From the NCBI RefSeq assembly GCF_006345805.1, contig NW_021832242.1, positions 1-61,622 on the forward strand: 61,622 bases of DNA, read 5' to 3'. Made by a program: the position numbers and the translations under genes. Position 1 is the stretch's first letter. The number at the start of each line of letters is the position of its first letter. Source of the DNA: Octopus sinensis. Taxonomy: Eukaryota. The notes under the pieces are model-generated. The model was not told the DNA's origin and made no database searches. It worked only from the letters and a program-made list of their open reading frames with translations. Below, piece after piece: positions 3,108-50,600 of the stretch.

Positions 3108-4896
3108 TGTCACAGTCCGAATAAAATACACGCCGAATAATTACATTCTTTAATTTTACTGAAATTAAAAATTTACACAACAAATGTTTAATTATTATTA
3201 AAAATATGATTTTTAATGTAAAATTCATTAACCTTTTTTACTAATTTATATAAACAAAACCAACCACACTCAATTTACGCAGTTAACTTATACGTTTGAA
3301 TATTGTTATTCCATTTTAGGTTATCCTAATAAAATTTTCATATAAAATTATCGTTAATTTAAATAAAAAATTATTTTTATTATGGATTTATGAAAATTAA
3401 TCAATTTTAGCTAATCGAGAAATATGAATTCCGTGTAACCGCTCACCGTCCTCCTTTTCGATAACATAGAGATCATTTCTTCGCTCGACAACAATATACT
3501 TATTAACATCAAGTCCATCGTACAGCGGATACTGCCGAACATTGGCATCGTTGTCCTGTCTAAAAATTAATTTGACGCTTGAGACCTTAAAAGCACAGTC
3601 GTTCCGACATTGATATTTTCTTCGTCGTATCTCCATTTTCTTTTTTCAATCATTTTTTCGCCAGCAATAATTAAGTTTTCTAATGCACTTTCTCGTGCCT
3701 CTGATAATCCAGTTGAATCATAGGCTAAAAGTTGCTCCATTCCCCCTTCATCAATCCTTCCAGGATTTTCAACACCCATGAATATATAAAAATGGATTTT
3801 TTGTCGAAGAATGAATGCTGTTATTGTAATCATACACGATGTCCTTTATGCATTCGCGATATCGTCCAAAACAATTTTGAGAAGAACTTGCCGACGATAT
3901 CCAGCGTTTTATGCTTTGATTAAATCTACAAATCGATTTTAAATCATTAACCTTTCGACTTGCCCTTGTACCCAAGGAGCACGAGGCCTCCCACGTACAT
4001 GTTTTATACCATATTTCGTACATAGAGCATCCATTTGCGAATTGCAAAATTCCCTTCCATTATCAGTGTGTAGAATAAGCGGAGGCCCGACATAATAAAA
4101 AATTCTTTGGAATAAATCTGCGATTTCTTCAGAAGATTTGGTCACCGACAGTTCAAGCATTACATATTTGGAAAAAGAATCCACAATTACCAAAATCTAT
4201 TTATTAACATTAAATTCATACCCAGCTAAAGCCATCATTCAACGCCGAATATCTTCTGATGTCAATTAAATCCGCAATGTATCTGTCCCTACATCTCCTT
4301 GCAATGATTGGCGTAATCGGAGGCTTCGTAGACAATAATTTTTCGACTAAGAATATTTACTAAAAGGAGTTATTACCTGACAGAAAGCACAATTCGAAAT
4401 CACCTTAGAGATTTCTTCTCTATTCAATCCATAATAGAGATTTCTTAATTTCGAAAAAAGCCGGTCTCTCCCAAAGTGGTTATAGTTATGTTCCGCCTAA
4501 ATTTTATTTATTAAGTTGGACCTCAACGCACTTAAGCTTTAATTCGATTTCATCTTCACAGAAAAAACGCAATTTAAGCCCTTTTTCGAAAATATGTTTT
4601 TCCATTTTCAAAATGGAAATTCTTTCCCAATTTTGTGAGCCTGTATCGCTCATGCCGCTCGATTGACGATGTATCAAAGTTGGAGTCTTTCATTTCTTTG
4701 ATTTTGTCCAGTGTTTCCTTAAATAATCTCACTACACGCATGTTTCACGCTTTTTTAAATAAAAAATAATAATGTGATTCTACTAAAATAAATAATCAAT
4801 TATTGATTTTTTCATACTAATTTTAGATTTCTAATTTTTTCAGCCATTTGTGACAAGTGTAGATTATTCGGCGTGTATTTTATTCGGACTGTCACA
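3108..4896 (-). mobile_element. Ginger-like DNA transposon with retroviral-type integrase
   Basis: 34-bp TIR starting TGTCACAGTCCGAATAAAATACACGCCG (1 mismatch); AAAA flanks on both sides. Spliced integrase (about 4741 to 3397) has HHCC (HNYNH...CAFC), D (IADL), D (HTDNGREF) and E (GQVER); 4 mini-introns; frameshifts. Confidence 0.85.
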
Positions 4897-4953
4897 AAAA
4901 ATAATATAATTATAAGTAAAAGATTATTAAAACGTGTTTTTTTGTTTGTTGTA

Positions 4954-6421
4954 ATGGGTAAAAAGGACAGTGTCACAGAAAATTCATTTTATGCAAAGAA
5001 ATTCCCCGAGTTTGTTATTGACAGTGAAGGGAATTTATTTTGCTCCAATTGCTCAACTGTTGTACGGTGTGACACAAAATTTTTGTTGATGCGCACCGTT
5101 CTTCAAAAAAACATTTAAAAGCACACAGTATTTCTTTGAATTTAAATTTATAGAATGGACAAATTCATCTCAGAGTTCACAAACATTTCTTTCGGCGATA
5201 ACGGATACTCGAAAGGATTGGGGGATCAAAGTAACACAAGCGTTTTTGGAGGCAAACATACCAATTTATAAAATCAGACATCCTTCCCTCATACGGCTTT
5301 TTGAGCAGGAAACATATCCTTTGCCATCTGAATCATCTTGCAGGTTAAATGTTAAAGAAATATCAAAATATAAAATTAATACCATTCAGACTCATTTACT
5401 GTTGTTTTTTTTAAGTTATTCAATAGTGGGGAATGGTTTTTTTTGTTTGTGATGAAGCCCAAATCAATGGAACTCGTTTTTTAATTACTTTGATTGGGAA
5501 AATCTCCACTCCAAAAAATCTTCATTTAGTATCGTGTACCAATCTATATTATCCGCCTACTACTTCAACAATTTGTGTTGAGGTGGACAAAGTAATAAAG
5601 AAATTTTCTATTGAACGTGAAAATTTTATATTATTCGTTACAGATGGGGCGAGATATATGACCAGTGGTATATATAAATAAATTTAATTTTAGCTGGGGC
5701 ATCAATGAAATTGATATACCAAAATCTTTTCCACGTGACTTGCGTGTCACATTTATTGCACAACTGTGCTCTAAAGATTAAGGCATACTTCGCAGATGTT
5801 GATGAATTGATTTCGTCTATAAAGGCTGCCACAGTCAAAAACAAGAGACGTTTGGAGATGTTTTCACGAATCGGAAATCCACCCGAAGTTGTGGTTACAA
5901 GATGGGGAAGCTGGCTAAAAGCAGCAAAATATTACTCCCAGAATCTTCCAGAAATTATTAAAATCGTATCTGAATTTGAAGGAGATGGAGTTTTAATACA
6001 AAATGTTTTAGTTTTTAATTATTTTAGGCAAAAAAATCAGTGAATAATCCTACGTTGTTTCCAAGCTTAACCCAAATCAGTTCAAATTATTTGGGATTAT
6101 TGAAATGATTTCAAATACTGAATTGCTTGATTACTCCATTGCAACAGCTTATGGTGATCTAACACCCTAGACTTTACATCAGATCCATGCGACATAAAAT
6201 CCTATATATCAAAAAAGCTTGAGAAATCAGGAATACTAAGTATTCTTGAATTCTCAAATAAGAATCTATCGCCAGAAGTTTATTCACATCTCAGAAAATG
6301 TAGCGCAAGTTCAGCATCTATCGAAAGGGCAATATCTCTTTTGACGAAAATTCTTAGTAAAGAGAGGAACTTTAAACCTGAAAATGTTCAGGAATATTTG
6401 ATTTCCTATTACAATAAATAA
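4954..6421 (+). pseudogene. hAT transposase (CGGBP-like type), frameshifted, 4 mini-introns
   Basis: N-terminal zinc finger (CSNCS..H), VCDE, VTDGARYM, CVSHLLHNCA, TRWGSW, SASIER. Introns 5128-5153, 5401-5426, 5668-5693, 6005-6027. Confidence 0.8.
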
Positions 6422-6554
6422 TTTCGTTAATTTTTTGCATAATGTAATGTTTACAATTAAAAAAAATATTTGTGCAATTTTTACAATTTTTAAAATTCAT
6501 TTTTGCAATTTTTTTTATTAAAAAGTGCAATTTTTTGGTTGCCCTAGTCATTAG

Positions 6555-6880: not shown

Positions 6881-6949
6881 TTATTTTTAAGGAAGATTTA
6901 GGAAGTTTATTTTAACAAAGAAAGGATCATTCCCTATTGAAGAAGCAAT

Positions 6950-10075: not shown

Positions 10076-10138
10076 TCAATCTCAATTTGGAGTTTATAAA
10101 ATTTAATTAATACATTACCACACCTAAACCATCTAGGC

Positions 10139-10692
10139 CAGGGGTTCTCAACTTTTTTAGCTCAAGGGCCAAATCGATAATTAAGATTAGCTTCGCGGGC
10201 CGCACAAAAAATATTTTATATATTTTCCATTTTACTAAATATTGATTCGCATAAATATGTAGATTCATATATGCATTATGTGTTATATTTTTGAATTTGT
10301 CTTGAGGAATTAATTTGTAAAAATTAATAATGGACGCATTTTTGAACAATGCCGCCAGTTCTATATCATGTTGTAAATTAATGAGTTCTAGTTGAAACTT
10401 TGCAGGCGCATCCTTAATTTCCACGCTGAATGGAGTTGCGAATATTTTCATTAAAGGAAGGAATTCTTTAAAATTCTAAAAATTAAATTTATATAAATGT
10501 ACCCCAAAACGTGTTTCAAATTGATTAATTAAATCACCAATTATGGATATGTTTTTTTTTGTTTAACCTTAAGAATAAATAATTAAATTTAAACATTATT
10601 AAAAAATTAAAAAAGTTAGTTACTCTAGAGGGGCCGCAAAAAAAATCCTGGGGGCCACATGCGGCCCCGGGGGCCGCATTTGAGAACCGCTG
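10139..10692 (-). mobile_element. Non-autonomous hAT (Buster) deletion derivative, 554 bp
   Basis: TIR CAGGGGTTCTCAA / TTGAGAACCGCTG; perfect TSD ATCTAGGC. Retains transposase C-terminus (FQLELINLQ) and a 27-nt intron (10476-10502). Confidence 0.9.
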
Positions 10693-10961: not shown

Positions 10962-13900
10962 TTATTCTAAGGCCTGTGGATAAACGATGTTTGCAGTCCG
11001 TCCATCCTTGGCAATATAAATAAATTTTCTCTTCTACCTACCCTTGAGCACCCCACATACAGCTGGCCATGTGAAAAGCACTCGTTCTCTAAAAATAAGC
11101 CTACTACCTTTAAAGACTGTCCCTGGGCCTTGTTTATTGTCATAGCAAAACTTATCTTCAGCGGAAATTGTAGTCTCTTAAATCTAAAAGGTAATTCTTC
11201 CGAAATCAGAGGTATTCGTGGGATATAAACATCCTCACCTCTGTAATTACCTGTTAATATTGTCGCTTCTATTACGTTAGCCATCAAATTCTTGATAACC
11301 AACCTTGTACCATTGCATAATTTAGGTGGCGCAAGATTGCGGAGTAACACAACCGGTACACCTATTTTTAATTTCAATAGATGATTCGGCATTCCAGATG
11401 GATCTAAGGAATTTATAAATTCTACAGGATATTCGCAGGCCCTTTCATGGTCCATAATAACGTCGACCGATTTATATATTCTTTCTCTGCCAGGGATTTT
11501 CATTAATAAATCTAAATTTATATTATGTACCTCATCATTAAGTGGAGCTAATATAGCTCGTTCACGCAGCCAGTCGAAATTCACGTAGTGTTCAGATAGT
11601 TCGGAATAGACGGCATTCAATAATTCTTCTGCTGTTTCTACGAAAATACATAATTCTTCCGGTAGCCTAATTTTCTGGTCTTGCATTTCTGAAGTGATTG
11701 CCCCATTTCCAATATCTAGAGATTTGTGGGAATATGCTATTAACGCCTTGTAAATGTGCACGTACATTTACATCTAAGCTTACCTTTTTCACGTGTGTCC
11801 ACAAATATGACGATTTGAGGCAGGCATTCAATTCATCCGCAGGCGTCCCTCTTTGAATAATTGGCAGCGTCTGTCTAAAATCACCTGCCAATACAACTAT
11901 TGCTCCCCCAAATAAATGGTCGCTACAATTCTTGATATCTCTATATGTTCGATCAACTGCTTCGAATGCGCCTTTATGAGCCATCGTACATTCATCCCAA
12001 ACAATTAACCTAGAATGCATAATTCTATTACCCGTAGTTGAATTTTTTTTACATTACAAACCGGTTCAGTAGTATATGAGAGATTCAACGGAATGTTGAA
12101 TGTCGAATGTGCGGTTCGACCGCCATCTAAAAGAGTTGCAGCAATTCCAGAAGATGCAACTGCTAAAGCTAGTTTATTTTCGCTTCTGACCTTAGCTAAT
12201 AATAGATTTAGAAGATAGGTCTTACCTGTTCCACCCGGTGCATCAATAAAAATGATAGAACCGTTTTCTTCTTGGATGACTCGATTAATTTCTCTGTATA
12301 CCTCCAACTGGCCAGTGGTTAAGCTTTGTTCTCTTTCTTCCACTATTGTTCGAAGTTCTTCTAAATTATAATGCTCATCAAATGAATTAATATTATGAAT
12401 ATCGCTGATTATAAAACCAAATTCACCTACACTCTTACCAACGATAGATATTAGCAATCTATCTATCATGATTAATCCAATGTTGAAAATCTCTGCATCG
12501 AAACTCAATCTATTCTTCTCTCTTAATATATCTTCACACATGCTTTCTCGGTGACCTTCCCACAGTTGTTGTGGATTTGCTAACCCACAATGGGCTAGCA
12601 TCAAAGTAAATAAATACCTTAGTCGCGATGAGGAATCTGCAAGTTCAGCTTCTGTTAAAGTCTGATTCCAGTGATTATCATCCTCTAAAAGACCTAATTT
12701 AAAACAGGCTTCTCTGTATGTTTCGCAGAGTACTCCATCTACAGTCCGTAGATCAGTGAAAGATTCTGGCCCTCGTACGGTGTGCAAAAGTAACCTAACA
12801 CAATAACATTCAAAATTATTTGGATGCACTGTATATACTCTACCCAATGCATCTGCACTTACAATTCCTGAATGTCCATTTACTGGATTTCCTCTTATCC
12901 TTCTCTTAAATCTCTTCCCCGCGACATCCCATGTATAATATCTAGGAACATCAACATAATATATAGTCTTTGCAAATTGATCTGTACGACATAATTCGAA
13001 GAATGCCATCAGAGTTGAATTTCTTGCATTTGTAACTTGATTGCGTGCATTCTGCTCTGTGAAATAAATTCTTTGCCCATTTTCCAGGTGAACCCCTAAA
13101 TGCATAACCAATGGATATCTTTCATGAATCGGATATCCAAAAATTCTCCATGCTCCTTCATTACTGCAGATATAGCGTCCATGTTGATAAAAAGTTGGCT
13201 CATCACGTTGCTCTATTGAAAAGATTGCCTGATCTGACCCTTTATTAATGTACTTACATACATATTTAATTGATCTAATTGAATTACAAAATTCCACATT
13301 GATATGTGCATCAAAAATCTTACTTAATAGTGGATTATAAGGCACTATCCATCTGTTATCAACTGTTATTTCATTTTCTTTTCCTTCGTGGAGGGTTGCA
13401 GTATATCCTCCTTCAGCTGCTCCCCTTCTCTGGTAAAATGGAAATCCATTTTCACCTGTTTGCGTGTTAATTATTAAGTTTTTTGGGTACCCTTTAGAAC
13501 ACTTACCATCTTGCATACACGGTGATGATCTGTTATATATGCCACACGGACCATGTATCATATTTCTTTTGATGATCTCGTATAATTCTCTATCTTCATT
13601 TGGATTTGGCAATTCTGCCCGTATGCAATCGTCTATCTCTGTAGGCCTAATTTTAGTTACTAACCATACTAATATATGTACATGTGGTAAACCTCTTTTT
13701 TGCCACTCTACTGTATACATGTGGCATCTTGTCTTCCCAAAAATCTGTCCCTTGCATAGAAGATCAATCATCTTATCGACTTTTTGTTTAAAAACACGTG
13801 CTATGATGTCTTGTCTATACTCGACCTTTTGTCCTACAAATATGTTATCACTAATTTCTGGCCATTTCGGATTACACGTAAAAGTGATAAACAGATCCGG

Positions 13901-15706
13901 AGTTCCGTAATTTCTAACGTATGTCATAGCATCTTGAGTTCGCTCATGCATATATCTTGGTCCTCCCGTGAATGACGAAGGCAAAATAACCATTTGACCT
14001 ACATTAGACACATTACCGTCATTCATTATGGCATCTCTTAGATGTATATACTCTTCTGCTCTCAGTTTCCGCTGATTCAACCGAATGTAGAGAAGTCTCT
14101 CTGCCTCTATTTTCGCATACATATCTACAATAAACTGATTAAATAACTGGCCTGTACGATGTAGAATGTTGAATTCCTGCTCTCTTATCATCAACCTATA
14201 AGAATAAAATTCCATACAACTGGTTTTTTTAGTAGTAGTTAAACCAGTCGACGGATTAAAATGCATTACCTTAAAATTGTACCCATCCTCTCCTCTCGGA
14301 AATAATAATGGGTACTGAAGTGCATCATATGACCGATGTGTCTCTGAAATTCTCATTAATCCAGTGGATCTCTTGTTTATTATTATGTCTCTCGAGTCAT
14401 AGTGTTGACCTACTATTAGAATTCCAACCTGGTTTGACGTTGGTGCGTTGTATCGACGGTTATGTTCATTTGCAGGTGTCCTATCTGCATGTATAATTAC
14501 CTTACAATCTTCATCTGCTGTGGATCTCAGAACAGATCTAAAAGATGAAATATACGTGTTGCACATTTGCAACATATTTTGTAACGAACTAATAATGTTG
14601 CCTCGTAGTCTTGAATCTGCTAGACATCTTCGGTTAGATTGTTCTTCGTGATTATCTATAAAGTAAATTTGTAAAAATTTAAAATCCTCGCCTTCACTTG
14701 GAAGGAGTGAACCCATCCTGTGATACACTTGCCCAAGTACCTTAAATGTGGGCATATAGCCCGTCGGATTGAAATTTCCACTTGTACCAAAAGATGTCAT
14801 CTGAAAAACATTATTGTACCTGCGAATATTATCAACGAAGTGCCTAGATGATGGTGTATCATTCCTCAACAGTGTTAAAAGAGGCTTAGGAGGCGGGTCT
14901 AAAACTGGTAAACGTACCTTTCCGCGACTGCAGCACATTCCGATAGTTTCCCCCTTAAATTTCATAGCTAAACAAAAAGTACATATCTCCGTTAAAGCAC
15001 CTATATTACCTAAATCACTATAGTCAGTGTGTATATTATAACTAAATCCTACGTTTACCAAAGATATATAATTATATAACCTACTATTCCGTCGTGAAAC
15101 GCGATGACGATTTTCAGCATTATGCTCATTCTGGGTTTGTTGGTTCCTTCTTTCTGTATTTCTTCTTGTGTTTTGATTCAGTCGATGTTCCCTCTGGTCT
15201 TCGGGCTCCTGGTCCCGTCTAACAGCAGTCCTGACCTTGTCCAGCTGTTGTCTAAGTTCCCTCTGGTCTTCAGGCTCCTGGTCCCGTCTAACAGCAGTCC
15301 TGACCCTATCCAGCTGTTGTCTAAGTTCCCTCTGGTCTTCGGGCTCCTGTTCCCGTCTAACAGCAGTCCTGACCTTGTCCAGCTGTTGTCTAAGTTCCCT
15401 CTGGTCTTCGGGCTGCTGGTCCCGTCTAGCAGCAGTCCTGACCTTGTCCAGCTGTTGTCTAAGTTCCCTCTGGTCTTCGGGCTCCTGGTCCCGTCTAACA
15501 GCAGTCCTGACCCTGTCCAGCTGTTGTCGAACTTCCTTTTGATTCTGTGTCTCTTCAGACCTTTTCCTAGCCATTCTCAACCTATTTTTTTCTCGTCTAA
15601 ATTTTGCCATTTCAGAACTCTCATTTGACCTCTTAACTGGCATTCTAATTCGCTTACTTAAACTAACGCATATATCATCGTGACTATAGTGTCTTGAATT
15701 AGCCAA
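10962..15706 (-). CDS. Helitron Rep-helicase (HUH Rep + PIF1 helicase), three single-base frameshifts
   Basis: HUH motifs [33 protein letters not shown]. Helicase motifs [37 protein letters not shown]. Frameshifts near 12045, 11725 and 11010. Confidence 0.95.
15187..15531 (-). repeat. Five tandem 69-bp coding repeats (23 aa, [23 protein letters not shown]) in the RepHel N-terminus
   Basis: Unit starts at 15187, 15256, 15325, 15394, 15463. Confidence 0.95.
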
Positions 15707-17372
15707 ATCTACATTTATTAATTTACGTTTTGCGCTATATAGATCATCTAAAACCTGTGTATTTCCAGAATATTCTATGTTCGTTAATCTGGAATCTGTT
15801 TCGACGTACTATAAAATAATTTACAGTTCATGTATTAATACCTTTCTAACATTCGGGTTTTCATTTAGACGATTTGGAAGATTAACTTCTGTAATGCTTG
15901 ATACACTGGCATTACCTCCACCTAGACCTACCTTACCTACACTGCCTACGCCTATATTAACTACAACCTACATCATCTACACCTACACAAACTACATTTA
16001 CCGCCTCACCATTTAAGCACATTTCATCTTTATTACTCCCCCCAATCTCCCCTCGTTTCTCTTTTTTTGTTATATGGTCCATTTTCTCTTGTTTGTTAAC
16101 ATTCTCAGATCTCTCTTGATAGGACATTCTTATGATTTTGTAAACGCGAATCAGTAATTTATATTAAATTTCTACGTAAATTTATTTAGTGAAATTTATG
16201 TAAAGTGTATTATCCAATCAAAGCCATTATACTTAATTGCCTCTATGTTTAAAGGAATTGAAACTTTAGCATAATCGAACTTGTCTGTTTCGGTGAAGAA
16301 AATGATAATCAGCCTCATCTTTGTGGTATTATACAGAAAAAAATTAAAGCCTGTTAAATCAAGGAGATTTAAATATAGGCAAATTGAAATTTACATGGCT
16401 AATTTGAATTTTATTTGCCTCTATCTTTTAAGGAATCTAAACAGTAGCATAATCGAATTTGTCAGTTTCGGCAGTTAAAAAGATAATGAGCCTCATCTTT
16501 GTGGAAAAACATCTAAGCCCGTCGAAGTAATCTGAATAAAGGCAAATGTAATTTAGATGACTAATTTATTGAATAAAGGTAAATGTAATTTAGATGACTA
16601 ATTTGAATTTTAATTGGCTCTATCTTTTAAGGCATTTAAACATTAGCATTATCGACTTTGTTAAATTGCATAAATTCATTATTAAATTTCTAAATTATTT
16701 GACTGGAAGGGATTATATATTTAACTAGCTCGGCAGCTCGCTTCGCTCACCGCGACCTAGCTCCTGCGGAGGGCCTGTTTCATCAAACAACTATAAGTTT
16801 ATGTAGATGTATAAAACTACCTGGTTTAATGTAACCCTATTCTATCGCCTGTTGATAAACGATGTTTGTCGTCCGTCCTTCCTTGGCATATATGAATAAA
16901 TTTTCTCTTCTGCCTACCCTCGAGCATCCCACATACAGCTGTCCATGTGAAAAGCACTCACTCTCTAAAAATAACCCAACTACCTTTAATGACTGTCCCT
17001 GGGCCTTGTTTATTGTCATTGCAAACTTTTTTTTCATTTTTTGTGGTCTATTTTTTTTATATTTAATTTTTCATTTTTTCCTTTGTAATTTCCTTTTTTT
17101 TATTTTTTTATTTTTTTGTTTTTTACTGGCGGAAATGGGGCAGGGGGAGAGCGGCAGGCAAGAAAGCGACACACAAAAAAGATTTAATTAATTACCTTAT
17201 TAAGCTGACCGTTTTTTCTTCAGCTTCGTTTTCCTCCTTCGGTTATCTATTTAAAAATTATTTTTGAATAATAAAAAGTTTAGGAAAAGAGGCATACCGA
17301 AAATAATTCTATCTTTACGAAAAACTCAAGTAAATAGTTAATATTTTTACGCAAATTCTTCTGATTGCGCTG

Positions 17373-17786: not shown

Positions 17787-18590
17787 GAAGGTTTTAATGG
17801 ACCTCATCATGAATGTCGAGGACATTCGCGTTGTTCATTTTAATCAAAATGCAGAAAATAATTTTTGATTTTTTGGGGGGGAAGGTTTTAAGGACTTCAT
17901 CATGTAAGTCGAGGACATTGTAGTTGTTCATTTTAACCAAAATGCAGAAAATTTTTTTTTAATTTTTTTTGGGAGGAAGGTTTTAAGGACTTCATCATGT
18001 AAGTCGAGGACATTGTAGTTGTTCATTTTAACCAAAATGCAGAAAATTTTTTTTTAATTTTTTTTGGGGGGGAAGGTTTTAAGGACTTCATCATGTAAGT
18101 CGAGGACATTGTAGTTGTTCATTTTAACCAAAATGCAGAAAATTTTTTTTTAATTTTTTTTGGGGGGGAAGGTTTTAAGGACTTCATCATGTAAGTCGAG
18201 GACATTGTAGTTGTTCATTTTAACCAAAATGCAGAAAATTTTTTTTTATTTTTTTGGGGGGGAAGGTTTTAAGGACTTCATCATGTAAGTCGAGGACATT
18301 GTAGTTGTTCATTTTAACCAAAATGCAGAAAATTTTTTTTTAATTTTTTTGGGGGGGAAGGTTTTAAGGACTTCATCATGTAAGTCGAGGACATTGTAGT
18401 TGTTCATTTTAACCAAAATGCAGAAAATTTTTTTTTAATTTTTTTTGGGGGGGAAGGTTTTAAGGACTTCATCATGTAAGTCGAGGACATTGTAGTTGTT
18501 CATTTTAACCAAAATGCAGAAAATTTTTTTTTATTTTTTTGGGGGAAGGTTTTAAGGACCTCATCATGTAAGTCGAGGACATCGTATTGC
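17787..18590. repeat. Minisatellite, about 95-bp unit x about 8.5, inside the Helitron
   Basis: GAAGGTTTTAA starts at 17787, 17881, 17976, 18072, 18168, 18262, 18357, 18453, 18545; central units differ mainly in homopolymer length. Confidence 0.95.
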
Positions 18591-19329: not shown

Positions 19330-20225
19330 CCTTTTAGTTTCATTGCAATATATTTTGGATTAATTTTCGTTTGTTTGCATTATCTGTATTTTTCTGTAAT
19401 TATTGTTTCTGAGACTTTAGGAAACACACACACGCACAAACACACACTCACAAAAACACACTCACAAACACACACTCACAGACTCAGAAACACACACACA
19501 GAAACACACAGGCGTATAGACTTTGTTTTTTGTTTTCATATTTTGTTTTATAAATTTGTTTTTTTATTGTGATTTTTTATTTTGTATTTCTATTGTGTTT
19601 TTTTCTTTTTATAGTGTTTTATTTTTCTCTTTGGATTTTTCGATTTTATATCATTTTTTTAATTTTTTTTTAATTTTTCTTTAATTTTTTTTATTTTTCT
19701 TTATTATTTTTTATTTTTGTTTAATTTTTTTAATTTTTCTTTTATTTTGTTTATTTTTCTTTATTATTTTTTATTTTTGTTTAATTTTGTTTAATTTTTC
19801 TTTATAATTTTGTATTTTTTTAAATTTTTTTAATTTTTCTTTATATTTTTTTTATTATTCTTTATTTTTCTTTAAATTTTCTTTAATTTTTTTTGTATTT
19901 CTTTAATTTTTTTTCTTTATTTTTTTATTTTTTTTCTTTATTTTTTTTATTTTTTTAATTTTCATCATTTTTTTGATTTGTATTTCTTTATTTTTCTTTA
20001 AATTTTCTTTATTTTTTTTGTATTTCTTTAATTTTTTTTCTTTATTTTTTTATTTTTTTTCTTTATTTTTTTTATTTTTTTAATTTTCATCATTTTTTTG
20101 ATTTGTATTTCTTTATTTTTCTTTAAATTTTCTTTAATTTTTTTTGTATTTCTTTAATTTTTTTTCATAATTTTTTTTATTTTTTTTTAATTTTCATCAT
20201 TTTTTTGATTTGTATTTTCTTCTAT
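19330..20225. repeat. T-rich low-complexity tract with CA-rich patch and about 120-bp internal duplications
   Basis: Direct inspection. Confidence 0.85.
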
Positions 20226-21411
20226 TTTTGTAGGGAGGATGGGGGGGAGTATTTTTGATTTTTGAGCTTAAAAAACAAATTAAATTAGAATCAACAGTCA
20301 CATAACACACCGAGTAGTTATTTAACAGATTTAAGAACGATAAGATAGATAATTAAAACAGGCATACCCAAATAAATTTAAAGTTAACGCAAAAACAGAA
20401 ATAAATAGTTAATTCATTATTAAATTTCTAAAATAGTCGCGAGTCCAAGTGGCTTTTCGAAAGGATTTCCTTGGCCATAGTACGTGGAAACTGTGTTTCC
20501 ATTTACGAGGCCGGAAATTTAGTTAGTTAATAACTATTTGTCAATTACATATAAATTCCAAAATAAAAAAAAAAAAAAAAAAAAAATAGTTAATATTTCT
20601 ACGCGTTTTCGCATAAATGTCTTGTCAATAGATAATCAATTATGTAAATCTTTATTAAAATTTGCTTTTTACTTTTTAATTTAAAGATTAGCATACTTGA
20701 GGTTGTCAGTTTCGGCGATTAAAAAGATAATAAGCCACTTTTTTGAGATATTATAAGGAAAGATTTGAATAAAGGTAAATGTAATTTAGATGACTAATTT
20801 GAATTTTAATTGGCTCTATCTTTTAAGGCATTTAAACATTAGCATTATAGACCTTGTTAAATTGCATAAATTCATTATTAAATTTCTAAATTATTTGACT
20901 GGAAGGGATTATATATTAAATTTGCTATGCAATTCTATTCAGATTGCCTCTTTTGGCTGGAAGGGATTATATATTAAATTTGCTATGCAATTCTATTCAA
21001 ATTGCCTCTAACATAAACAGCCTTAAAGCTTTTTTTAAATTGAACATGTAAATTTTGGCGATCGAAAACAGTAATTAGCTTCATCTTTTGTGTATTATAA
21101 GGAGAAGAGTACAGATAGTCAATTCAAGGTAATTTATAAATGGCAATTTGTAATTTAGATGTCTAATATGAACGAATATCATTAAAAAAATATTTTAGAA
21201 AAAATACGTTATTAAATTTTTAAAGTACAAAATTGGTTTTCTTTATTGTTGTTCATTTTTTTTATCTGTTTGCATTGTTTTCATTTGATTTTAAGTTTTG
21301 CATTTTTTAATGTATTTTGGTATATATAATTTTTTGTGTATTTTTTAAGTCGAGGACTTTCTTGTTGTTCATTTTAACAAAAACGCAGAAAATAATTTTG
21401 TTTAATTTTTT

Positions 21412-33546: not shown

Positions 33547-34172
33547 GTGCAATAAGTATGGGATTAGACGTTCCAGAAAGTTGCGAACTCATAAGGTGCA
33601 GTCTGTGGTCGAGAATGCCAGAGTATGTATTAAAGTGGATACTAGTATCACACCTCGATACTTGTCCAGCACAATAAGCCGGACATTGTGGTACAAGATA
33701 AGGTCTCTGGCGAGATACTTATCATAGAAGTTGGCATCACATGTCTAGATCGTTTGACCACAGTGGAAGTGGAAAAGAAGTGTAAGTACGACCTTCTTGC
33801 AAACGAGCTTGGGTTGATGCACAGATGCAAGGTCCTTGTCATTCCTTGCGTGATGACATGGGAAGGAATTGTATCTAAGTACCACAAGGGTTATCTCAGG
33901 CAGTTGGGAGTCGATAGTACATTCAGGCCTATATGCAGTCCACTGTCCTGAGGAGAACTCTAGAGAGTGCATCTGTTGATGCACGCAGACCCAGCCCCCT
34001 AATGCCACATGGGCAGAATTGTCGGCTGGAAAATGCTCTCACAGAGCTATTCCTTCGACCAGAAGCAGAAGAGGCTGGTCTCCAGACTTCAGATGCGAAC
34101 GGTTCGTCGGATTAGTTAGTTAACTATTTTATCTCGGGTTTTTGTTAATAAAGTGTGTCAATTAAAAAAAAA
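33547..34172 (+). mobile_element. 5'-truncated R4-like RLE LINE with poly(A) and 14-bp TSD
   Basis: PD-(D/E)xK endonuclease KPDIVV...IIEVGIT...EKKCKYDLL; poly(A) to 34172; TSD ATACAAGTTATTCT (33533-33546, 34173-34186). Confidence 0.9.
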
Positions 34173-36599: not shown

Positions 36600-37000
36600 T
36601 TGATTTTTAATTATTGCGTCTGCTTTTAGTTGATTCTCCTCCTCTTCGAGCCCGAGCAAATGTCTTCGACGGGTACACTATCCATTTTATAGGGCAGGCT
36701 ATTTTTGTGGTTGTTCTCGAGTCCGATTTAATCGCATGCTTCGCCGCTGTAGGCAGGAGTTTATACTCCGGGCGCATGCTTTCCAATGTTCTCTTGATCA
36801 CGATTGACTGGACATAAACTCGCGTAGATTTATGGACTTGTAAGGAGTTCTCGTAGTGCTTATAGAATTTGGATGTTATTTCATCCCACTTGAGAACCAA
36901 CGGTACGACATTTACCTTAGCATTATGGATTAACCTCAATTCGCTTGCCAAAAGGTCGTATTTATGTAATTTCTCAACTTCAACATGCTTCAAAGATTGT
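36600..37000 (-). mobile_element. R4-like RLE LINE extreme 3' fragment
   Basis: VEVEKLHKYDLLASEL...VVPLVL.WD.I..KFYKHY...YVQSIVIKRTLES. Confidence 0.8.
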
Positions 37001-37099
37001 TGAGAAGTAATCCCAATTTCGATCAGCGTAATGATGTTCCGAACTTTGTCGTAAACTTATAGACATATAAAAATTGAAATAATTCAAATCAAAGTTGCT

Positions 37100-37519: not shown

Positions 37520-38808
37520 CAATTTTTTGAGGGAAAAAAGTAATGGCACGAAATCCAATTAATATTAGTTGCATTCCTTTTTGCTAGCAGAACTGCTTCC
37601 AATCGTTTTTTGTAAGAAAAAATTAGTTTTTGACATTCTACTTTAGAAATATTTTTCCATTCTTCGTAGCAAATTGTTTTTAATTCCTGGATATTTTTTG
37701 GTTTTCATAAGCCAACTTTTATTTTTTTCGCGACCGAAGGTAAAAGGACATTTTTCCAAAATTTCGCAATATTTAAGAGAATTCATCATTCCATCAATTA
37801 CAAATAGTTCACCAACACCTGTTGATGAAAAACAACCCCACAACATGATACTATCTCCCCCGTGCTTTACGGTAGGTATGGTGCATTTTGGGATATACGC
37901 CTGATTTGATTTGCGCCAAATTGAAAGCGTGTAGTTCAGTCCGAAAAGTTGTATTTTTGATTCGTCCGACCACAAAATATTGTTTATGAATTCATTTTCT
38001 TTGTTCAAAAGATTTTTTGCATATTGGATTCGCGCTGAAAGGTGTATTTTCTTTAATAACGGAACTCGACGGGGCCTTCGCTTATTGATACCTTCTTTGC
38101 GTAGTGTAGAAGTGATTGTACGAAGGGACACTGACGTTCCTGTGATTTTTAAATCATCGGCCAATTCTTTTCGAGTTATTTTTGGGTTTGAAGTAACTAA
38201 TCTTTTCATTAATGAAGAAGAACGCAGAGATATCTTTTTGGAGCACCCGATCTTGGTTTATTAATAACAGTTCCGCGTTGCTTCCATCGAGTAATAATAT
38301 TTCGAACAGTACTTTTTGGTAATATCAACAATTTAGAAATCTCTCCATAACTTTTACCGTTTTGGTGGGCAGTTACAACTCGTTGTTTTAGGTCCAAAGA
38401 ATGCTCTTTCCTCATCGACGAGATAATTTTATTAAAAGGCGAAAAATAAAAGTATATTATACTAATCGGAATCTACTAATCAATTATATTAATAGAACTA
38501 AGAATCAATTATTTCAAAGAAAAAACAAGGCACCAAAAGATAATCATTTGTATCTTATTGTCAAAAAAATCCATATTTTTTGATAGTTTCATCACTTTTT
38601 TACACATCAAATTTGACGTTTTTCTAAATATGAAGCAAAAACAATTATATTTATTTGAAATTCATGAATATAATTAGCACGAAATGGGTTCAAAAGAATG
38701 CAAGATTTTATTGTGTAGCATGATGAACTAAATCGAAAAAGTTATCATTGTAAAAATATATTGAATTAAAAAAAATGATAGGTGTGCCATGACTTATTTG
38801 CCCCACTG
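37520..38808 (-). mobile_element. Tc1 element, internally deleted, one end eroded
   Basis: TA|CAGTGGGGCAAATAAG end at 38808; paired-like [22 protein letters not shown]; the region with the second D and the E is deleted; C-terminus KRLEAVLLAKG. Confidence 0.85.
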
Positions 38809-38829
38809 TATCTGAGCTGTGCTGATAAG

Positions 38830-40219: not shown

Positions 40220-41057
40220 ATGTTGGACAACCGTTTTGATTTTCATAAAATAATATTTTACAAGATGGCACACTTCCTCCTAAATGTTTAACATTCCTCT
40301 TATCTGAACAAAAACTTAGGAACAGTTCAATTTCTTCAGTGGAAGCACTAGTGCGGCAACTAATAGACATTGAATCGATTCAATTCGGAGATTTCACTCT
40401 CGGGAACCAAGAACAAACTTCAGTGTACTTTGACTTACGTCTTATCCCATCTCACACAATTGTGATGGTATTATCATAATTCATACAATTTACAAAGAAA
40501 CAAACAATTGATTTACTCTGTTCAAAAATATTGGAGAGTGCTCTTGAATTCGATATCATTTGCGGAGTGCCCTTTGCAGCCATCAGTTTTGCCACAGTCA
40601 GTTATATATCTTATTAAAGTGTGTCTCCCTCGGGCTTAATAAGGGAATGATACTCAAAAGAAAGGAATTAAAGAAATATGGCACACAAAAATTAATCGAG
40701 GGGACGTGGACAAAGGGAATGAGGTGTCTCGTTGTTGAAGATGTTGTTGTCAGGGGGGATTCGATTAATCAAGTCGTCCAAGTAATTTTTGATCACAGTT
40801 TTTAAGGACCTGAGGAATAATGGACTGATCGTTGAAGACGCAATTACAATCTTGGACAGAGAACAGGGCGGGGCTGCCAATTTACTGGCAAATAATGTCA
40901 AATTACATTCGTATTGCCTCACCAGTCATTTGATAGAGTACTCACGTGTAGTGGAGTCTATAAGGCAATCAGGAAGGAACCAGAGTTTGAGGGGATGGCC
41001 TCAAAATTATTTGAATTTATGCAGAACAGCTGTGTGGGGCTGACCTTGGTTGGTTAA
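40220..41057 (+). CDS. OPRT: Stand-alone orotate phosphoribosyltransferase (UMPS N-domain type), about 233 aa, 5 mini-introns
   Basis: Introns 40233-40264 (first exon tentative), 40468-40497, 40597-40619, 40782-40806, 40911-40936 give an open frame. FGDFTL, YFDLR, CGVPF, RKE.K.YGT..LIEG, CLVVEDVV, LDREQGG. No OMP decarboxylase sequence follows. Confidence 0.85.
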
Positions 41058-42630: not shown

Positions 42631-42649
42631 CATATTTTATTCAATGAAT

Positions 42650-43877: not shown

Positions 43878-44709
43878 TCCGCTGTGGAAACCGCCTATCG
43901 GGGTGTGTGGAACTTAGAAGGGGAGTCCCGCAGGGATCTATCTTGAGTCCACTTCTGTTCAACCTCTTCTTGGCGGACATTCCTCTGCCGTCGACACGTA
44001 CTGGCAAGCTCGTTATCTATGCTGACGATATCCTGGTCATGGATACCTCGAAAAGGATATCGCAGTCTTGGAGACGACTGAAATCATACATTGCAACGCT
44101 AAAGATGTGGACTATAGAGAAGGGTTTGACCCTAGCACCGGAGAAGAGCACCATTTCATGGTTGCGGAGAGGGAGTCGCTATGCGGAGTCTTGTGCATAT
44201 GCGATGAGTAGCTATGTGATGGATCTCTCGAAAAGAAAAAATCTTTCTTACCTGGGAGCAACCATTAACTGTCGTGGCTCGTACGTAGAGCATATAGCAA
44301 ATCAGAGAAAGAGGAGTGTGAGGATCCTCAAAAGCTTAACCAGGTTCCATCTGGATCCGGAAACGTACATCTACGTATACAAAACGTGTGTGCAGCCAGT
44401 CCTCACATATGGCTACGAGGGCTGGTACGGTACGGAGGAGAGTGACTACCTGATCGAACAGTTGGAAAAGACAAGACGTTTCGCTATGAAATTGGCTTAC
44501 GGAGTACAACTTGACGGAAGGCTAAAAGACTCACAAGAATCCTCTGTGCCCACGATCCGGATGGTCTTGGAGAATTGTCGTCAAACATGACTAGTATTGG
44601 GGATACGCATGGAAAGAGACACTTCGGTGCCTTGTTTTTATCTCCCCGCCGATGTTTTTCTTCCTTGTTTTTCTTTTTCTTTTCGCTCAATAAACACTAT
44701 TCTATTCTC
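43878..44709 (+). mobile_element. 5'-truncated LINE (RT C-half) inserted in the Tc1 left TIR
   Basis: PQGSILSPLLF, YADD; TATTC tail; 7-bp TSD TAATTTG (43871-43877, 44710-44716); the right TIR shows the empty site. Confidence 0.92.
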
Positions 44710-45784
44710 TAATTTGGAAAAATTAAAAGCATGACACACAATATGTTAGTATATGTCAGTGACAAAAAAAATGATTCAAAAATATTATCTATACAAATAT
44801 CTTGTTTTATATGATTTAATATCTCTATTTTAGGAAAAAGCATATGGATGACTTTACAAAAGGAAAAATTATTGCTTTATATGAAACAAAAATGACACTT
44901 CGGGCAATTTCTTTGAAAGTTGGGGTACATGAGGCCACAGTGTCTAATTTTATCCAACGATACAAAAAGAATGGCACAATCCATCGGAAACCAGGATCTG
45001 GAAGGCCAAAAATACTTGATAAAAATGATTTGAAAGAATTGATAAAGTATTCGGAAGAAAATCCAACAAAAACATCTAAAGAGATCTCAAGTGAAATGAC
45101 GAAACTAACCAATAAAGCAATTTCCTCAAGAACAGTTATAAGAAATCTTAATGAAAATGGTATATTTGGACGTATTGCAAAAAATAAGCCATTTTTGAAT
45201 ATAAAACACACTAAAAAAAGATTAGAAATAACGAAAAGATTTCTTGCCATTTCTGATGAAAAATGGAAAACCACAATTTTCTCAGATGAATGCATTTTTT
45301 ACGCCAATCCAAACAAAACTCGAAAAATAGTATATAGGAAGAGCGGTGAACAACTTAATTCCAAAAATATTTCAACAACAGTGAAATTTGGAACAGGTTG
45401 ATTTGGCTTGAAAACAAAAAATAGGGAAAATCATGATATGGGGATGTTTTTCTTTTAACGGCGTCGGAGAATTAGTTTTTGTTGACGGAACATTGAATTC
45501 TGCAAAATATTTAAATCTTTTAGTCAACAGCCTACCGAGATCAGTTGCAAAAATGGGACTTAATGACTTTGTTTTTCAACAGGATAATGCACCGTGTCAT
45601 ACAGCGAAGTTAATCATGAATTATTTTGATAAAGAAAATATAAAAACACTAGACTGGCCATCCCAGTTACCTGATCTAAATCCAATTGAGCATTTATGGG
45701 CTCATATAAAAGCGGAACTCAGTAAAATCGATTTGAAAAATGCTGAAGAATTAAAGCAGGAACTTCTTCATATTTGGGGAAATA

Positions 45785-47615
45785 CAGTGAATCCTCGCAA
45801 ATTGGCCATTTTTGGTACATAGAGATTTTATGGCCAATTTGAGAAAATGGCCAATTTGAAAAAAATCAATATTTAAAAATAAAATAAACACGTTTAAATT
45901 TTATTAAAATAAAATTCAATCCCTAATTCCTTTTTATTTGCTCTTTTTACATTTTCTTTGTATTTTCTTATTGCAGTAATCAGCGAAACATCATTCTCAT
46001 TTTCTGCATTACAGTAAAGTTGCCTTTCTATTCTAGTTAATGTCTTTGCAATATCTTTTCTATCGAGTGGATATATGATTTTTGTCTCTTCGTCGCTAAT
46101 TTCAGACTCTTGATCCTCTTGTAAACAATTTTCGTTTATATCTTGATCTTCTGTGTTTTCGATATTTAGAAAATCTTCGCTCATTAGAGGATCGAAAATG
46201 TCAGTTCTTTCAATTTCAGTCTCATAATGTTCAATTAATGTATTTTCGTGATTAGATTCATTTAAAATCTTAAAACAATTTTGAATAGTTTCAGTAGATA
46301 CGTCATCCCAAGCCATATTAACAAACAAAATTGCATCTTTTAATGTCAATTTTTTGTATGAATTGTATACAGAAATATTTTCAGTCTCCAGCAAATCAGT
46401 TAAGTACTGTAGCTTTCTTCTCATGAAATGAGTCTTGAAGGTTTTTATAATTCCAATATCCATTGGTTGTAGTAATCCAGTAGAATTTTTAGGAAAAATA
46501 AAATCTAATACAATCCAAGTTTTGAGGAATAGAATGTGCAGGACAGTGGTCTATTAGCAATAAAATTTTCTTCTTTTTATTTTAAGCTGGAGATCAAAGC
46601 TAATAATCCAATCAATAAAAATAGATCCAGTCATCCAAGCTTTCTGTGAGCTATAATATGAGACAAGACATCCATAGTCAAAATTTTTAAAACATCTAGG
46701 CATTTTTGGTTTTCCAATCATCACAGGTTTCAATTTATGACTTCCGGTCATGTTTGAACAAAGCATAATAGACACACGGTCTTTAAAATTTTTGTATCCT
46801 TGGAATCGGTTTCTGCATACGCTTTTCGATGGAATAAGCTTGTAGTATAATGCAGTTTCATCCAAATTATAAATTAGATCAGGCTTATACGATTTAGAAA
46901 TTTCTTAAATTCTTCACGAAAAGAATTAATGTCAACTACTTTATCTGTTCGCATCTCTCCATGTAATTTTAGCATTCTAAAACCGTGTCTCTTTTGAATT
47001 TTGCCAGAAATCCATTAGAATTTTTAAAGTTACTAAGTTGTAGCTCTTCGGCAAAATGCGCAGCCTTACACGATATTAAGGAATCATTCAAAAAACCACC
47101 TAAAAATTGGTTTTCAATTAATACCTTTAGACTCTATTGTATCCATCCATTCAATCAATTTTTCTTCAAGCGTAGGAAATTTTGGTTTGTGAGCAGCTTT
47201 ATACGAATTTTGATAGATTTTCGAATCCCGTAAAATAGAGTCTTTATTAAGCAGTAGATTATGATCGTCTTTCTCGAGATCGTCTTGTGGAATAAATGTG
47301 AGAATCTGTCAGCCAGAAGCTGACACGAAACACTGTCATTTTCTTCCTTGTAGTTTATAATTTGTGTTTTTTCAAGAAAAGTGAGCCGAGTATAACGTCC
47401 ACGAGAAATTTTATAAGACATGTGATTAAAAAAATAGTTTATTTTCTAATTAGAAAAATAATAATTCAAAAATTGTGGCCAATTTGAGAATTGGCCAATT
47501 TACTAAGAAAATTAATTTTTTTCTTAGTAAATTGTGCAAAAATTGGCCAATTTAAAAATTGGCCAATTTAAAAATTGGCCAATTTGCGAGGTGGCCAATT
47601 TGCGAGGATTCACTG
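45785..47615 (-). mobile_element. Tigger/pogo element 1, frameshifted, one mini-intron
   Basis: TIR CAGTGAATCCTCGCAAATTGGCCA; TA flanks; CENP-B-type HTH, LDETAL, QPMDIGII; intron 47100-47124. Confidence 0.92.
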
Positions 47616-47617
47616 TA

Positions 47618-50600
47618 CAGTCCGACCCCCAAATGGGGCACCAAGTGCCCCAAAATGCGGGGGTGCCCCAAAAACAGGGGTTTGTTATTTTTTAAAAATT
47701 AAACCATTAATAAACATCAAAAAACATTTTTACTAAAATATTCAGTTATTTTCTTTTTATTTATAGAGTTTTGTCTGATACTGTTCGTCAATTTCAGCCG
47801 AAAATCAAAAAATCTCGGAGCATACTTGGTGCAACATTAGAAATTTTTTCTTCTAAATTGTTAAGCAGATCTTTTGTTTTTGCTACGACATTTTCACTAT
47901 TTTCGGTTTCTGAATATGTATCATAAACATTATTGTTCATGTCTTCGCATTCTCCATCAATTGTTTCGTTAACAACTTGATCTAAATGTTCATCTGTTAG
48001 ACCATAGGTTTTCACGAGAAATTTCTCGCGGCGCAAATGCTAATAAAAAATAATCTCGCGGCACATAATCAAAAATCAAAACATAATTATAAAATTCCAA
48101 ATTCAAAATTTATTATTTTTACATAATTTTTCTATGTCTGGCTCAATATTTGATAAGGCCAGCCGCATTTCTGAATCTAAATCCAGTAGATTTTCTCGCT
48201 TATTTGTTTTAATGTTTTGTAATGCAGAAAATCCCTTTTCACACAAATAAGTTGTTGCAAATTGTAGAATGATCCGCATTGCTTTATCTGTTATTTTTGG
48301 AAATCTAGAACGAATTTTGATCCAAAATTCGCCAATATTTAATTCCGTATGTGATAATTTTAAGGTACGATCATTAAATAGTTCAATAAGCTCCATATTT
48401 TCGAACAATGATAACTCATTACTATGACTAACCAAAAATAGATTCCGTATCTAAAACTAATTATTTAAAATAAATACCCAATCATATTTTTCAATGTCTA
48501 TGTCTGGAAAATAATTATTGACTTTTTGTTCCAATGATGTCAAATGCTCATATATAAGACTTTGTATTATGGTACCGTCAGAATCTAAATTGGCTTTATA
48601 AATTAGAATGCGAAACCATTAGTCTTAGGAAACATGCTAAAATCCCCACTTAATACTAGTCTTCTCCAATATGTAATATTCATTTTTAAAGCATTTAACT
48701 TGTCCGTACAACTCAAAATTGTCTCATTATTTCCTTGCATGCTTAGATTCACATCATTCAATATCGAAAATATGTCCGTTAGATATGCTAATTTTAATTT
48801 CCAATTCGAATTGCTGATCAATTCATGAAATTGATAGCATTGTTCTCTCGTGAAAAATTCAGCTATCGTGTCCCTTAATTCATACACTCTGGCCAGTACC
48901 CTTCCCCGTGATAACCATCGTATTTCGGTATGTAACAATAAATTTTTATAACTTGCTCCCATTTCATCGCATAAAGAATTAAAAATTCTAGAATTTTTAG
49001 ATCGAGTTTTTATATAATTGATCATTTTTATGACATCATCCATAACTGATTTTAAAGCAGACGGAAGAGTTTTCGAAACCAATACTTCACGATGTAAAAA
49101 ACAATGTGTTGAAAGTATTTGATCATTCTGTGCTTTTAGTAAAGAAACCTGAATTTAATCATATAATAAAACAATATACAAGTCCATTAAGTCTTCCAGA
49201 CATAGATGGTGCCCCATCTGTGCATACACCAACACAATTTTTAAAGGAAATATTATGTTGATTAAAATAATCAAATTGTACATATCAATTGCACGAGTAG
49301 TAGTAACTAGTGCCTTGCAGAAAAGAAATTGTTCAATAATACTTTCTGACTTTTCAGTACGAATATAAATAAGCAACTGTGCAATTCCTGCTACGTCAGT
49401 TGATTCGTCAATTTGCAATGAATATAAATTGTTTTTCATTATAGATACCACTTTTTCTTCAATATCAAACGACATTGTACTAATTCTTCGACAAATAGTA
49501 TTGTCAGAAAAGGGAATTTTCAATAATTTTTTTTCAAATTCCACGCCAAACATTGTTCGGACTATTAATTTGCATGCTGGAAGGATAAGATTTTCGGCAA
49601 TTGTATGAGGTTTCATTTTCTTGGCAATCAATTCCGATACTAGATAAGAGCACTTTACTGCATCTTCTGATTTTCCAAATGATTTTGAAAATGATTTTTT
49701 ACTTACTCTAAATATGTATATATATAATTATTAACACTACCTATGTTTTTTGCTTAATTCTTTAAAATAATCAATTGAATAATCTTTATATTCCGGGTGC
49801 TTAGATAAAAAATGTCTACGAAGTTTAGATGGAACCATTGATTCATTCGACAACACCTCCATGCAAATCAGGCACTGTGGTAAACTATTTCCAGTGCCAC
49901 AACAGTCAAAACCCATAGATAAAAAAGATGATTTGTAATGACGAATACTCCGATGCACAGACATAACAAATAGCAACGTGATTATAATTTATTATAATTG
50001 TTTCATTATAAATAATTTTTAAGTTAAAAATTAAACAAAAAATAAGTAAATATAGATCTTCACGCGGCACATTTTTTATCATCCCGCGGCACAAAAATGT
50101 GCCGCGGCGCAGTGTTTGAAAACCTCTGTGTTAGACAGTTTTTTGTTGCATAAGAATCACGGTTCCTGTCGATTTTCTTCCAACAATTAACAATACTTTT
50201 AGCATCTATTTTCTCCCATCCTTTTGAAATTAGCATCATAACCTGACGCAAATTTAATTTACCAATAGAATGTGTAAAATTGTTTTCGAAATCTTGAAAA
50301 CATAAAAATTCCATAAGAAAGAGGAATAATAATCTTTAAAAATCTTGATTATTCCCATATCCAAAGGTTGTAAATAGGGCGTTGTATTTTTCGGCAAAAA
50401 TAAAAATTCGATGTTCGAACATTCGGCAGTTTTATGGCATCCCGCATTGTCAAGTATTAATAATATTTTTCTGTTGTTTTTGCAAAACGATTCATTTATA
50501 AGTGTAAGCCAACTCATAAAAGTCTTTCCAGTCATCCATGCATTTTGAGAAGATGAATACAATAACCCAAAATCTTGAACATCAAAATTTTTTAGACACC

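Follow-up and report, generated by a model that had tools for sequence, protein, structure and literature searches.

Introns within transposase genes are well established in Ac, the P element, Tol2, Tc1 and Tc3. Predicted introns also figure in the annotation of the Paramecium Tc1/mariner elements Sardine, Thon and Anchois (PMC3464196). In animals, intron lengths like those described below are reported only in myxobolid myxozoans and the dicyemid Dicyema japonicum (PMC13644364), and the dicyemid intron median is 27 bp (PMC6543705). Here we analyzed a 61,622-nt stretch of DNA (positions 1 to 61,622 of the forward strand of contig NW_021832242.1, assembly GCF_006345805.1, filed under Octopus sinensis; hereafter the window), in which 18 GT...AG segments of 23–33 nt break the transposase genes of seven DNA transposons. 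The origin of new spliceosomal introns is a long-standing open question for which clean cases are rare, and normally intron-free transposase genes offer a known zero state for intron gain. If several unrelated families each gained 1–5 introns of ~26 nt, these gains become datable on family trees, and their mechanism and rate become testable.

Our analysis suggests that the segments are mini-introns of the U2-type GT-AG class, that they form part of the transposase genes in several families of DNA transposons, and that they would be spliced from the RNA of these genes. We put at about 75% the probability that these are real introns, acquired by transposable element (TE) lineages in a short-intron host and spread by transposition.

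All seven elements were read in three frames, and exon peptides and introns were placed by exact matching. All 18 segments start with GT and end with AG; Ginger carries five, hAT2913 four, hAT48003 four, hAT27912 two, and hAT10139, Tc1 and Tigger one each, and hAT27912 holds one extra decayed candidate (AT..AG, 27 nt). The initial annotation had listed at least 17 GT-AG introns of this size in the seven elements, with four in Ginger; the joins it quoted, TVKFGT|GKIMIWG, GQVER|FNQ, RLNGL|VSLLK and YDW|IRN, were recovered exactly. The element boundaries that it placed at 2913, 3108, 10139, 27912, 45785, 48003 and 50128 proved to be true ends of terminal inverted repeats (TIRs), while its Tc1 start at 43731 was unconfirmed, the coding sequence (CDS) starting at 44844. 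The TE introns have a mean length of 27.3 nt (n = 18; range 23–33). Their sizes match, as had been claimed, those of nine GT...AG introns of 23–30 nt in two host genes: SQLE (squalene epoxidase; 30108-31650, plus strand), with six mini-introns of 24–29 nt in an intron-bearing region at 30325-31455, and OPRT (40249-41040, plus strand), with at least three of 23–30 nt in an intron-bearing region at 40468-40806.

GT..AG segments make up 0.24% of all 23–33 nt segments in the window. The chance of finding 18 of 18, with five registers allowed per site, is ~3e-35, and chance is excluded as their source. The remaining breaks in the open reading frames (ORFs) of these elements are frameshifts of 1–2 nt or internal deletions, and insertions of other sizes were not found. 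A homology-free scan for segments of 18–45 nt that restore 30 + 30 open codons gave 260,301 solutions without a GT-AG signal. Frame restoration alone is thus non-discriminating, and we therefore used spacing against homologous references. Where junctions were compared with a reference (a profile of 109 Buster proteins, SB100X, CENP-B, Pfam domains or intron-free paralogues), the spliced models aligned gap-free; the support for the first two introns of hAT2913 and the fifth of Ginger is mainly the restored frame. Since TIRs and/or target-site duplications (TSDs) are present, the carriers are transposons, not host genes. Several are nested: Ginger lies in hAT2913, Tigger in Tc1, and hAT48003 in a pogo element.

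The most complete case is hAT48003 (48003-50128, minus strand), a Buster-type element with TIRs and the 8-bp TSD GTCTAACA. Its introns, all on the minus strand, are intron 1 at 49708-49740 (33 nt, phase 2), intron 2 at 49149-49179 (31 nt, phase 0, joining RLNGL|VSLLK), intron 3 at 48585-48616 (32 nt, phase 1) and intron 4 at 48451-48477 (27 nt, phase 0, joining YDW|IRN). The spliced protein of 579 aa matches the Buster profile end to end with 383 bits; no gap falls exactly at the four junctions, although junction 3 has a 2-residue gap one residue away. Against the intact 597-aa Buster of the window, the alignment is gap-free over all four sites. Short TIRs, transposase domains and, for three of the elements, 8-bp TSDs identify the hATs, of which 10139, 27912, 48003 and 53872 form the Buster group; the best database relatives are ZBED5, SCAND3 and GTF2IRD2-like proteins.

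The second Buster-type element, hAT27912 (27912-29719, plus strand; TIR CAGTGATTTTCAAG...), has an internal deletion and two frameshifts and matches the profile in two blocks. Its intron 1 (28488-28514, plus strand, 27 nt) is in frame and stop-free; the profile score is 151.8 bits with the segment removed and 137.9 bits with it kept as a 9-aa insertion. Intron 2 (29238-29265, plus strand, 28 nt, phase 0) joins FDARFQ|SFKEG without a gap against the profile. The decayed candidate at 28878-28904 (plus strand, 27 nt), which ends in TGTAG, appears as a 9-aa insertion, "klisfific", relative to the profile, and its removal yields the exact profile spacing. This segment may be a former intron whose donor mutated in a dead copy.

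The third, hAT10139 (10139-10692, minus strand), is internally deleted and resembles a miniature inverted-repeat transposable element (MITE), with TIRs and the 8-bp TSD GCCTAGAT. Its one intron (10476-10502, minus strand, 27 nt, phase 0) joins FETRFG|NFKEF. A 94% identical MITE copy on contig VCDQ01000570.1 (L003) retains the intron with its GT/AG ends, at a length of 24 nt. The intron after RF[G/Q] occupies the same codon boundary and phase in hAT10139 (27 nt) and hAT27912 (28 nt); the splice sites are kept, the intron sequences differ, and the flanking protein is clearly diverged. The shared position and the retention in the 94% identical copy indicate that this intron predates the split of the hAT subfamilies and was kept spliceable, that is, that it is part of the gene structure of the family and was copied by transposition. 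At least one intron would thus have been acquired before the two hAT subfamilies split. The 8-bp TSDs of the two independent MITE insertions (TSDs at 10131-10138/10693-10700 in the window; L003 32385-32960) are near-identical, GCCTAGAT and GACTAGAT, suggesting that targets around CTAG are strongly preferred.

The Tc1-like transposase CDS (44844-45784, plus strand) has HTH_Tnp_Tc3_2 and DDE_3 matches, aligns with SB100X (Sleeping Beauty, 5CR4) at E 1e-38 and is cut at its 3' end by the Tigger insertion. Its intron (45397-45424, plus strand, 28 nt, phase 1) joins TVKFGT-G-KIMIWG, and this junction is gap-free against SB100X, a second Tc1 of the window (Tc1-37646) and the nearest cluster representative in the database, P0258 (49% identity). 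There is no other defect in this gene before the truncation. Ends and a TSD of the Tc1 were not found, as the element is truncated by Tigger and further rearranged, and the sequence beyond Tigger is not Tc1. The sole annotated model of this Tc1 is XP_029656187.1 (233 aa, filed under O. sinensis), placed at 1-1990 of contig VCDQ01005811.1 (L004), or about 44028-46017 of the window. The model jumps from NENGIFG to LNSLPRS via a false intron of ~350 nt, as judged by eye, and has foreign terminal exons, indicating that standard annotation pipelines miss mini-introns and cannot model those of 28 nt.

The pogo/Tigger element within Tc1 (45785-47615, minus strand) has perfect 26-bp inverted-repeat arms, a TA TSD, and DDE_1 and HTH_Tnp_Tc5 matches. 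Its single intron (47100-47124, minus strand, 25 nt, phase 1) joins IESK-G-GFLND, and the spliced N-terminus is gap-free at the junction against the DNA-binding domain of human CENP-B (1HLV).

The element hAT2913 (2913-6546, plus strand) starts with the TIR TAGGGCAACC..., is flanked by the 8-bp TSD GTCATTAG at 2905-2912 and 6547-6554, and is of the DUF659 type, not Buster. In its spliced model, a sub-threshold DUF659 match runs over the junctions of introns 2 and 3. All four introns are on the plus strand. Intron 1 (5128-5153, 26 nt, phase 1) joins KAH-K-WTN with the frame restored, and the junction of intron 2 (5401-5426, 26 nt) is spanned by the DUF659 match. Intron 3 (5668-5693, 26 nt, phase 1) joins YMTS-A-GASMK, and a related fragment at 56731-56931 is unbroken over its site. 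Intron 4 (6005-6027, 23 nt, phase 0) joins LIQN|AKKSV, and a relative on L003 with 46% identity is gap-free there.

Inside hAT2913 lies the Ginger-type integrase transposon (3108-4896, minus strand), with a 33-bp TIR starting with TGTCA. Ginger TIRs end in TGTNR, with TSDs of CCGG/CCGT in Ginger1 and an AT-rich RTATAY in Ginger2; the flanks here, AAAAA(A)/AAAAA(T), are AT-rich and not CCGG. A reverse transcriptase was not found inside this 1.8-kb element. The spliced model has unbroken Integrase_H2C2, rve and rve_3 Pfam matches spanning four junctions, and a Ginger-like gene on L003 (42% identity) gives a 230-residue alignment that is gap-free at four of the intron sites. On the minus strand, intron 1 (4497-4521, 25 nt, phase 0) is spanned by the H2C2 match and gap-free against the L003 relative. 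The last three nucleotides of intron 2 (4347-4376, 30 nt, phase 0) are an in-frame TAG, and a 1-nt deletion follows the intron; the peptide CQSKKLLST at this site is likewise gap-free against that relative. Intron 3 (4197-4221, 25 nt, phase 0) joins FSW|ILVIVD within the rve match, intron 4 (3926-3951, 26 nt, phase 2) joins GQVE-R-FNQ within the rve_3 match and is gap-free against L003, and intron 5 (3560-3585, 26 nt, phase 2), the one missing from the initial annotation, joins TVLL-R-QDND with the frame restored.

Gain or inheritance was judged from uninterrupted relatives, which are available for each of the groups. The young Buster (53872-55904, plus strand) has an intact 597-aa ORF (53958-55751) without introns, which gives a single Buster profile match of 870 bits. 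Its copies on two other contigs are 99.7–99.8% identical, for which reason the element was probably active recently. An exact database look-up of the 597-aa ORF found no entry; a protein 81% identical to it was seen in the unrelated sequencing run SRR10294826. Tc1-37646 (37646-38472, minus strand) is uninterrupted at the Tc1 intron site. The second pogo (50257-51291, minus strand) is one ORF of 345 aa with unbroken HTH_Tnp_Tc5 and DDE_1 matches; it is intact over HTH_Tnp_Tc5, the domain broken by the Tigger intron, the exact site lying outside the pairwise alignment. The Rep/Hel gene of a Helitron (10970-15808, minus strand) is a 1267-aa ORF (12008-15808) with Helitron_like_N and PIF1 matches, two 1-nt frame changes and no introns; in its N-terminal part, a 69-nt (23-aa) unit is repeated in tandem about five times with 94% identity (15187-15585). 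Not all DNA transposons here are colonized, as the Helitron, the young Buster, the second Tc1 and the second pogo are intron-free.

A long interspersed nuclear element (LINE) at 24206-27431 (minus strand), the one LINE examined in detail, shows 1-nt frame changes only and no AT-rich inserts. This agrees with the initial annotation, which saw no such introns in LINEs, and, as a single case, it is in line with what is expected of elements with an RNA intermediate. The LINE has a CCHC gag-like ORF1 and an ORF2 and a G+C content of 46–52%, compared with ~35% for the genome, a mismatch that could reflect a recent arrival.

The comparison with the closest Buster and Tc1 relatives, which had been proposed as a check, showed that the nearest database relatives (49–51% identity) are full-length and unbroken at the sites. 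Those of hAT48003 (<=51% identity) are proteins of 600–680 aa, mostly on contigs of 2–3 kb, and the match to the nearest Tc1 relative (49% identity), a 338-aa protein, is a single uninterrupted stretch. A protein-database query with a chimera of Ginger, Tc1 and hAT2913 returned 16 weak matches, swamped by long retrotransposon polyproteins. Altogether, the introns occupy 17 distinct positions in four superfamilies, of which 16 were seen in a single element each, and none is present in the relatives examined. Because the introns are lineage-specific and their sites are unbroken in the relatives, TE lineages probably acquired most of them while residing in the short-intron lineage. The direction seen from these relatives favours gain within transposon lineages. 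Of the original idea that intron gain acts on resident transposons, the derived state of the introns relative to intron-free relatives stood, while nothing shows action on individual resident copies.

Several points weigh against this interpretation. The direction rests on relatives at only 28–51% identity, and the database relatives come largely from prokaryote-style gene callers that are unable to call introns, so that intron-bearing relatives are under-represented. The introns were mostly detected via ORF breakage, and the set is thereby biased toward segments that contain stops or shift the frame. The sample is this one 61-kb window and ~70 kb of sister contigs. Intron 2 of hAT2913, the weakest of the 18, requires a further frameshift in the T-run next to it, and an exact look-up of the Tc1 products in the protein collection found no entry for the spliced or the unspliced form; the absence of the spliced product counts here.

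The strongest alternative is that the introns are ancestral to the transposon lineages, or arrived by horizontal transfer, and shrank to host size, and that the intron-free relatives lost theirs by recombining with reverse-transcribed spliced mRNA. Loss of this kind is documented in CACTA transposases, in which loss dominates (PMC4158355), and LINE reverse transcriptases are abundant in the window. The RF[G/Q] intron is clearly older than the hAT subfamily split. Ginger1 transposases carry 0–4 introns, three of which are ancient and conserved with GIN1/GIN2 (PMC2836005); as this family already bears introns, gain is not established for Ginger. However, the Buster, Tc1 and pogo database relatives are full-length and unbroken at the sites, the solved reference proteins CENP-B and SB100X are gap-free as well, and none of the 17 positions in four superfamilies was seen in the relatives examined. 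We therefore regard ancestral introns as unlikely and prefer acquisition within the TE lineages.

Acquisition by the lineages leaves the tempo of gain to be considered. Ultra-short introns may have been born repeatedly and fairly recently in dicyemid DNA transposons while the positions in host genes stayed conserved; we offer this as a tentative extension, to which we give rather less than even odds. If it is true, multi-copy datable families would form a natural time series of intron birth, and the source and mechanism of each gain would be readable from intron-free sister copies. Selection might favour such gains, e.g. through better expression or through escape from a surveillance of intron-free foreign genes, although this is speculation.

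The properties of the introns bear on their source. The AT content is 81% in the TE introns (n = 18) and 72% in the host introns (n = 9); a TAG 3' end is found in 16 of 18 and 4 of 9, respectively, and an exonic AG just before the intron in 8 of 18 and 0 of 9, all in small samples. Young introns at proto-splice sites might explain these differences. Of the 18 TE introns, 12 contain YTRAY-like motifs, and a T-rich run lies ahead of the AG; splice signals are reported to be reduced in D. japonicum (PMC13644364).

It is highly improbable that the segments are copies of a tiny Introner-like element or sequences eliminated at the DNA level, like the internal eliminated sequences (IESs) of ciliates. 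The preceding exonic AG could be read in this direction, several introns have an AT-rich 3' half in common (...AAATTTAATTTTTAG), and one pair shares 14 nt, a length reached in 10 of 500 shuffles. Overall similarity, measured by pairwise longest common substrings, is nevertheless not above that of shuffles (39 of 500), and a BLAST search with each intron over 135 kb of genome found no further copy except in its own paralogue; an Introner-like source is thus not supported. Intron 4 of hAT48003 has a 20-nt match at 24083-24102, which was rejected as AT-rich intergenic sequence. The 18 introns showed neither a consistent target-site duplication nor TA...TA boundaries, and with GT...AG boundaries instead, the signal of ciliate-type DNA elimination is absent.

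Even less probable is that the segments are unspliced, as short intron-like junk insertions in decaying copies. The copies are indeed dead, with frameshifts and deletions, and the splicing of the introns is predicted from the sequence. Junk insertions would, however, have to account for GT..AG ends in 18 of 18 cases, for narrow lengths equal to those of the host with no insertions of other sizes, for one site conserved with intact splice sites over diverged subfamilies, and for their presence in a Tc1 copy that is otherwise defect-free up to its truncation. That the interrupted genes are domesticated transposase-derived host genes with ordinary host introns is scarcely credible, since, despite a gene-like intron density (~3–4 per kb of CDS in Ginger, hAT2913 and hAT48003) and the known gain of introns by domesticated transposase genes (PMC3369469), all are bounded by intact TIRs and/or TSDs, sit inside one another and show frameshifts or internal deletions, and hAT10139 is a multi-copy MITE.

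For introns acquired by TE lineages, the following course can be proposed. An autonomous copy would be transcribed, the host spliceosome would remove the mini-introns by intron definition, and the mature mRNA would encode an intact DDE transposase or integrase. As cut-and-paste transposition moves DNA, the introns would be inherited by every daughter copy; elements that replicate via RNA could not keep them.

The copies in the window are mostly dead, bearing frameshifts, internal deletions and nested insertions: about six frameshifts in Tigger, three in Ginger, about five in hAT2913, one in hAT48003, and two together with an internal deletion in hAT27912. L004, taken as an independent assembly, reproduces the Tc1 and Tigger introns unchanged, as well as the frameshifts of Tigger and hAT48003. 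Assembly error was therefore rejected as the cause of the frameshifts in these two elements; they are real mutations, and splicing would not rescue most copies. The suggestion in the initial annotation that many broken TE ORFs here may be spliced accordingly holds only in part, since most copies also carry real frameshifts or deletions.

The window and the matching "octopus" contigs are very probably DNA of a dicyemid (Dicyema) parasite of Octopus sinensis, a host identity that we infer from the following observations. The window has a G+C content of ~35%, is AT-rich and dense with animal-type transposons, and also contains ordinary genes with tiny GT...AG introns; the genome of D. japonicum, an inhabitant of Octopus sinensis, measures 67.5 Mb with 36.7% G+C and 49% repeats (PMC6736024). 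The 17.6 kb of the window at 44028-61622 are the same locus as L004, from the O. sinensis assembly GCA_006345805.1, with 99.64% identity (53 substitutions and 6 indels). Two further contigs of GCA_006345805.1, L003 (854 kb) and VCDQ01010506.1 (L001), have transposon families in common with the window, and in one of them a WD40-like gene is interrupted by a 23-nt intron, GTGAG...TAG. To explain the 99.7–99.8% identical Buster in "Octopus sinensis" contigs, contamination was preferred to a horizontal transfer between octopus and parasite, because one contig is the window locus and another has the gene with the 23-nt intron. If the parasite origin is true, XP_029656187.1 and the "GTF2IRD2-like" and "EPM2AIP1-like" RefSeq entries are parasite transposon proteins filed as octopus.

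Other features of the window were also observed. A 96-nt satellite forms two arrays, at 17787-18586 (8.4 copies at 96% identity) and at 21348-22022 (a related array with 316-nt higher-order units), between which sits a very AT-rich low-complexity stretch (19650-20210); a further related array lies in L004, past the right end of the window. The ORF fragments at 33646-33948 (plus strand), 36610-37056 (minus strand) and 53406-53738 (minus strand) have in common a KPDIVV...IEVGIT...VEKKCKYDLLA... motif without a Pfam match, probably an uncharacterised retroelement domain.

What appears to be new here is that Buster, Tc1 and pogo lineages with intron-free relatives carry ultra-short introns of host size, with several in one gene. 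Transposase introns as such are known; introns in dicyemid transposons are described neither in the dicyemid genome papers PMC6736024 and PMC6543705 nor in PMC13644364. Like the known transposase introns (Ac, P, Tol2, Tc1/Tc3; Ginger1, PMC2836005; CACTA, PMC4158355), those of the window have the canonical GT-AG form within the ORF, would be spliced by the host and would be inherited by DNA transposition. In contrast to them, they are 23–33 nt long, fall in Buster, Tc1 and pogo lineages with uninterrupted relatives, reach up to five per ~1.2-kb CDS and occupy lineage-specific positions.

The nearest precedent is that of the Paramecium elements (PMC3464196), in which transposase ORFs likewise contain introns in a genome with ~25-nt introns. 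They differ in their ciliate host, in having one or few potential introns, mentioned only in passing, and in that neither an intron-free comparison nor a claim for multiple superfamilies was made. The mini-introns of dicyemid host genes (PMC6736024, PMC6543705, PMC13644364) are of the same length class, have GT-AG ends and are AT-rich. According to Ogino 2010, as cited in PMC6543705, their positions are conserved with those in other animals, whereas the TE introns occupy positions that are uninterrupted in relatives. Work on domesticated transposon-derived genes (PMC3369469) likewise used the intron-free ancestral state of TEs to spot new introns; those are single-copy host genes, whereas the carriers here have remained multi-copy transposons with TIRs and TSDs. 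Introners (PMC9860276, PMC12130899) also link mobile DNA to new introns. In that system, the transposon itself becomes the intron and exists in many near-identical copies, whereas the introns reported here lie inside transposons, are mutually unrelated and are too short to be elements themselves.

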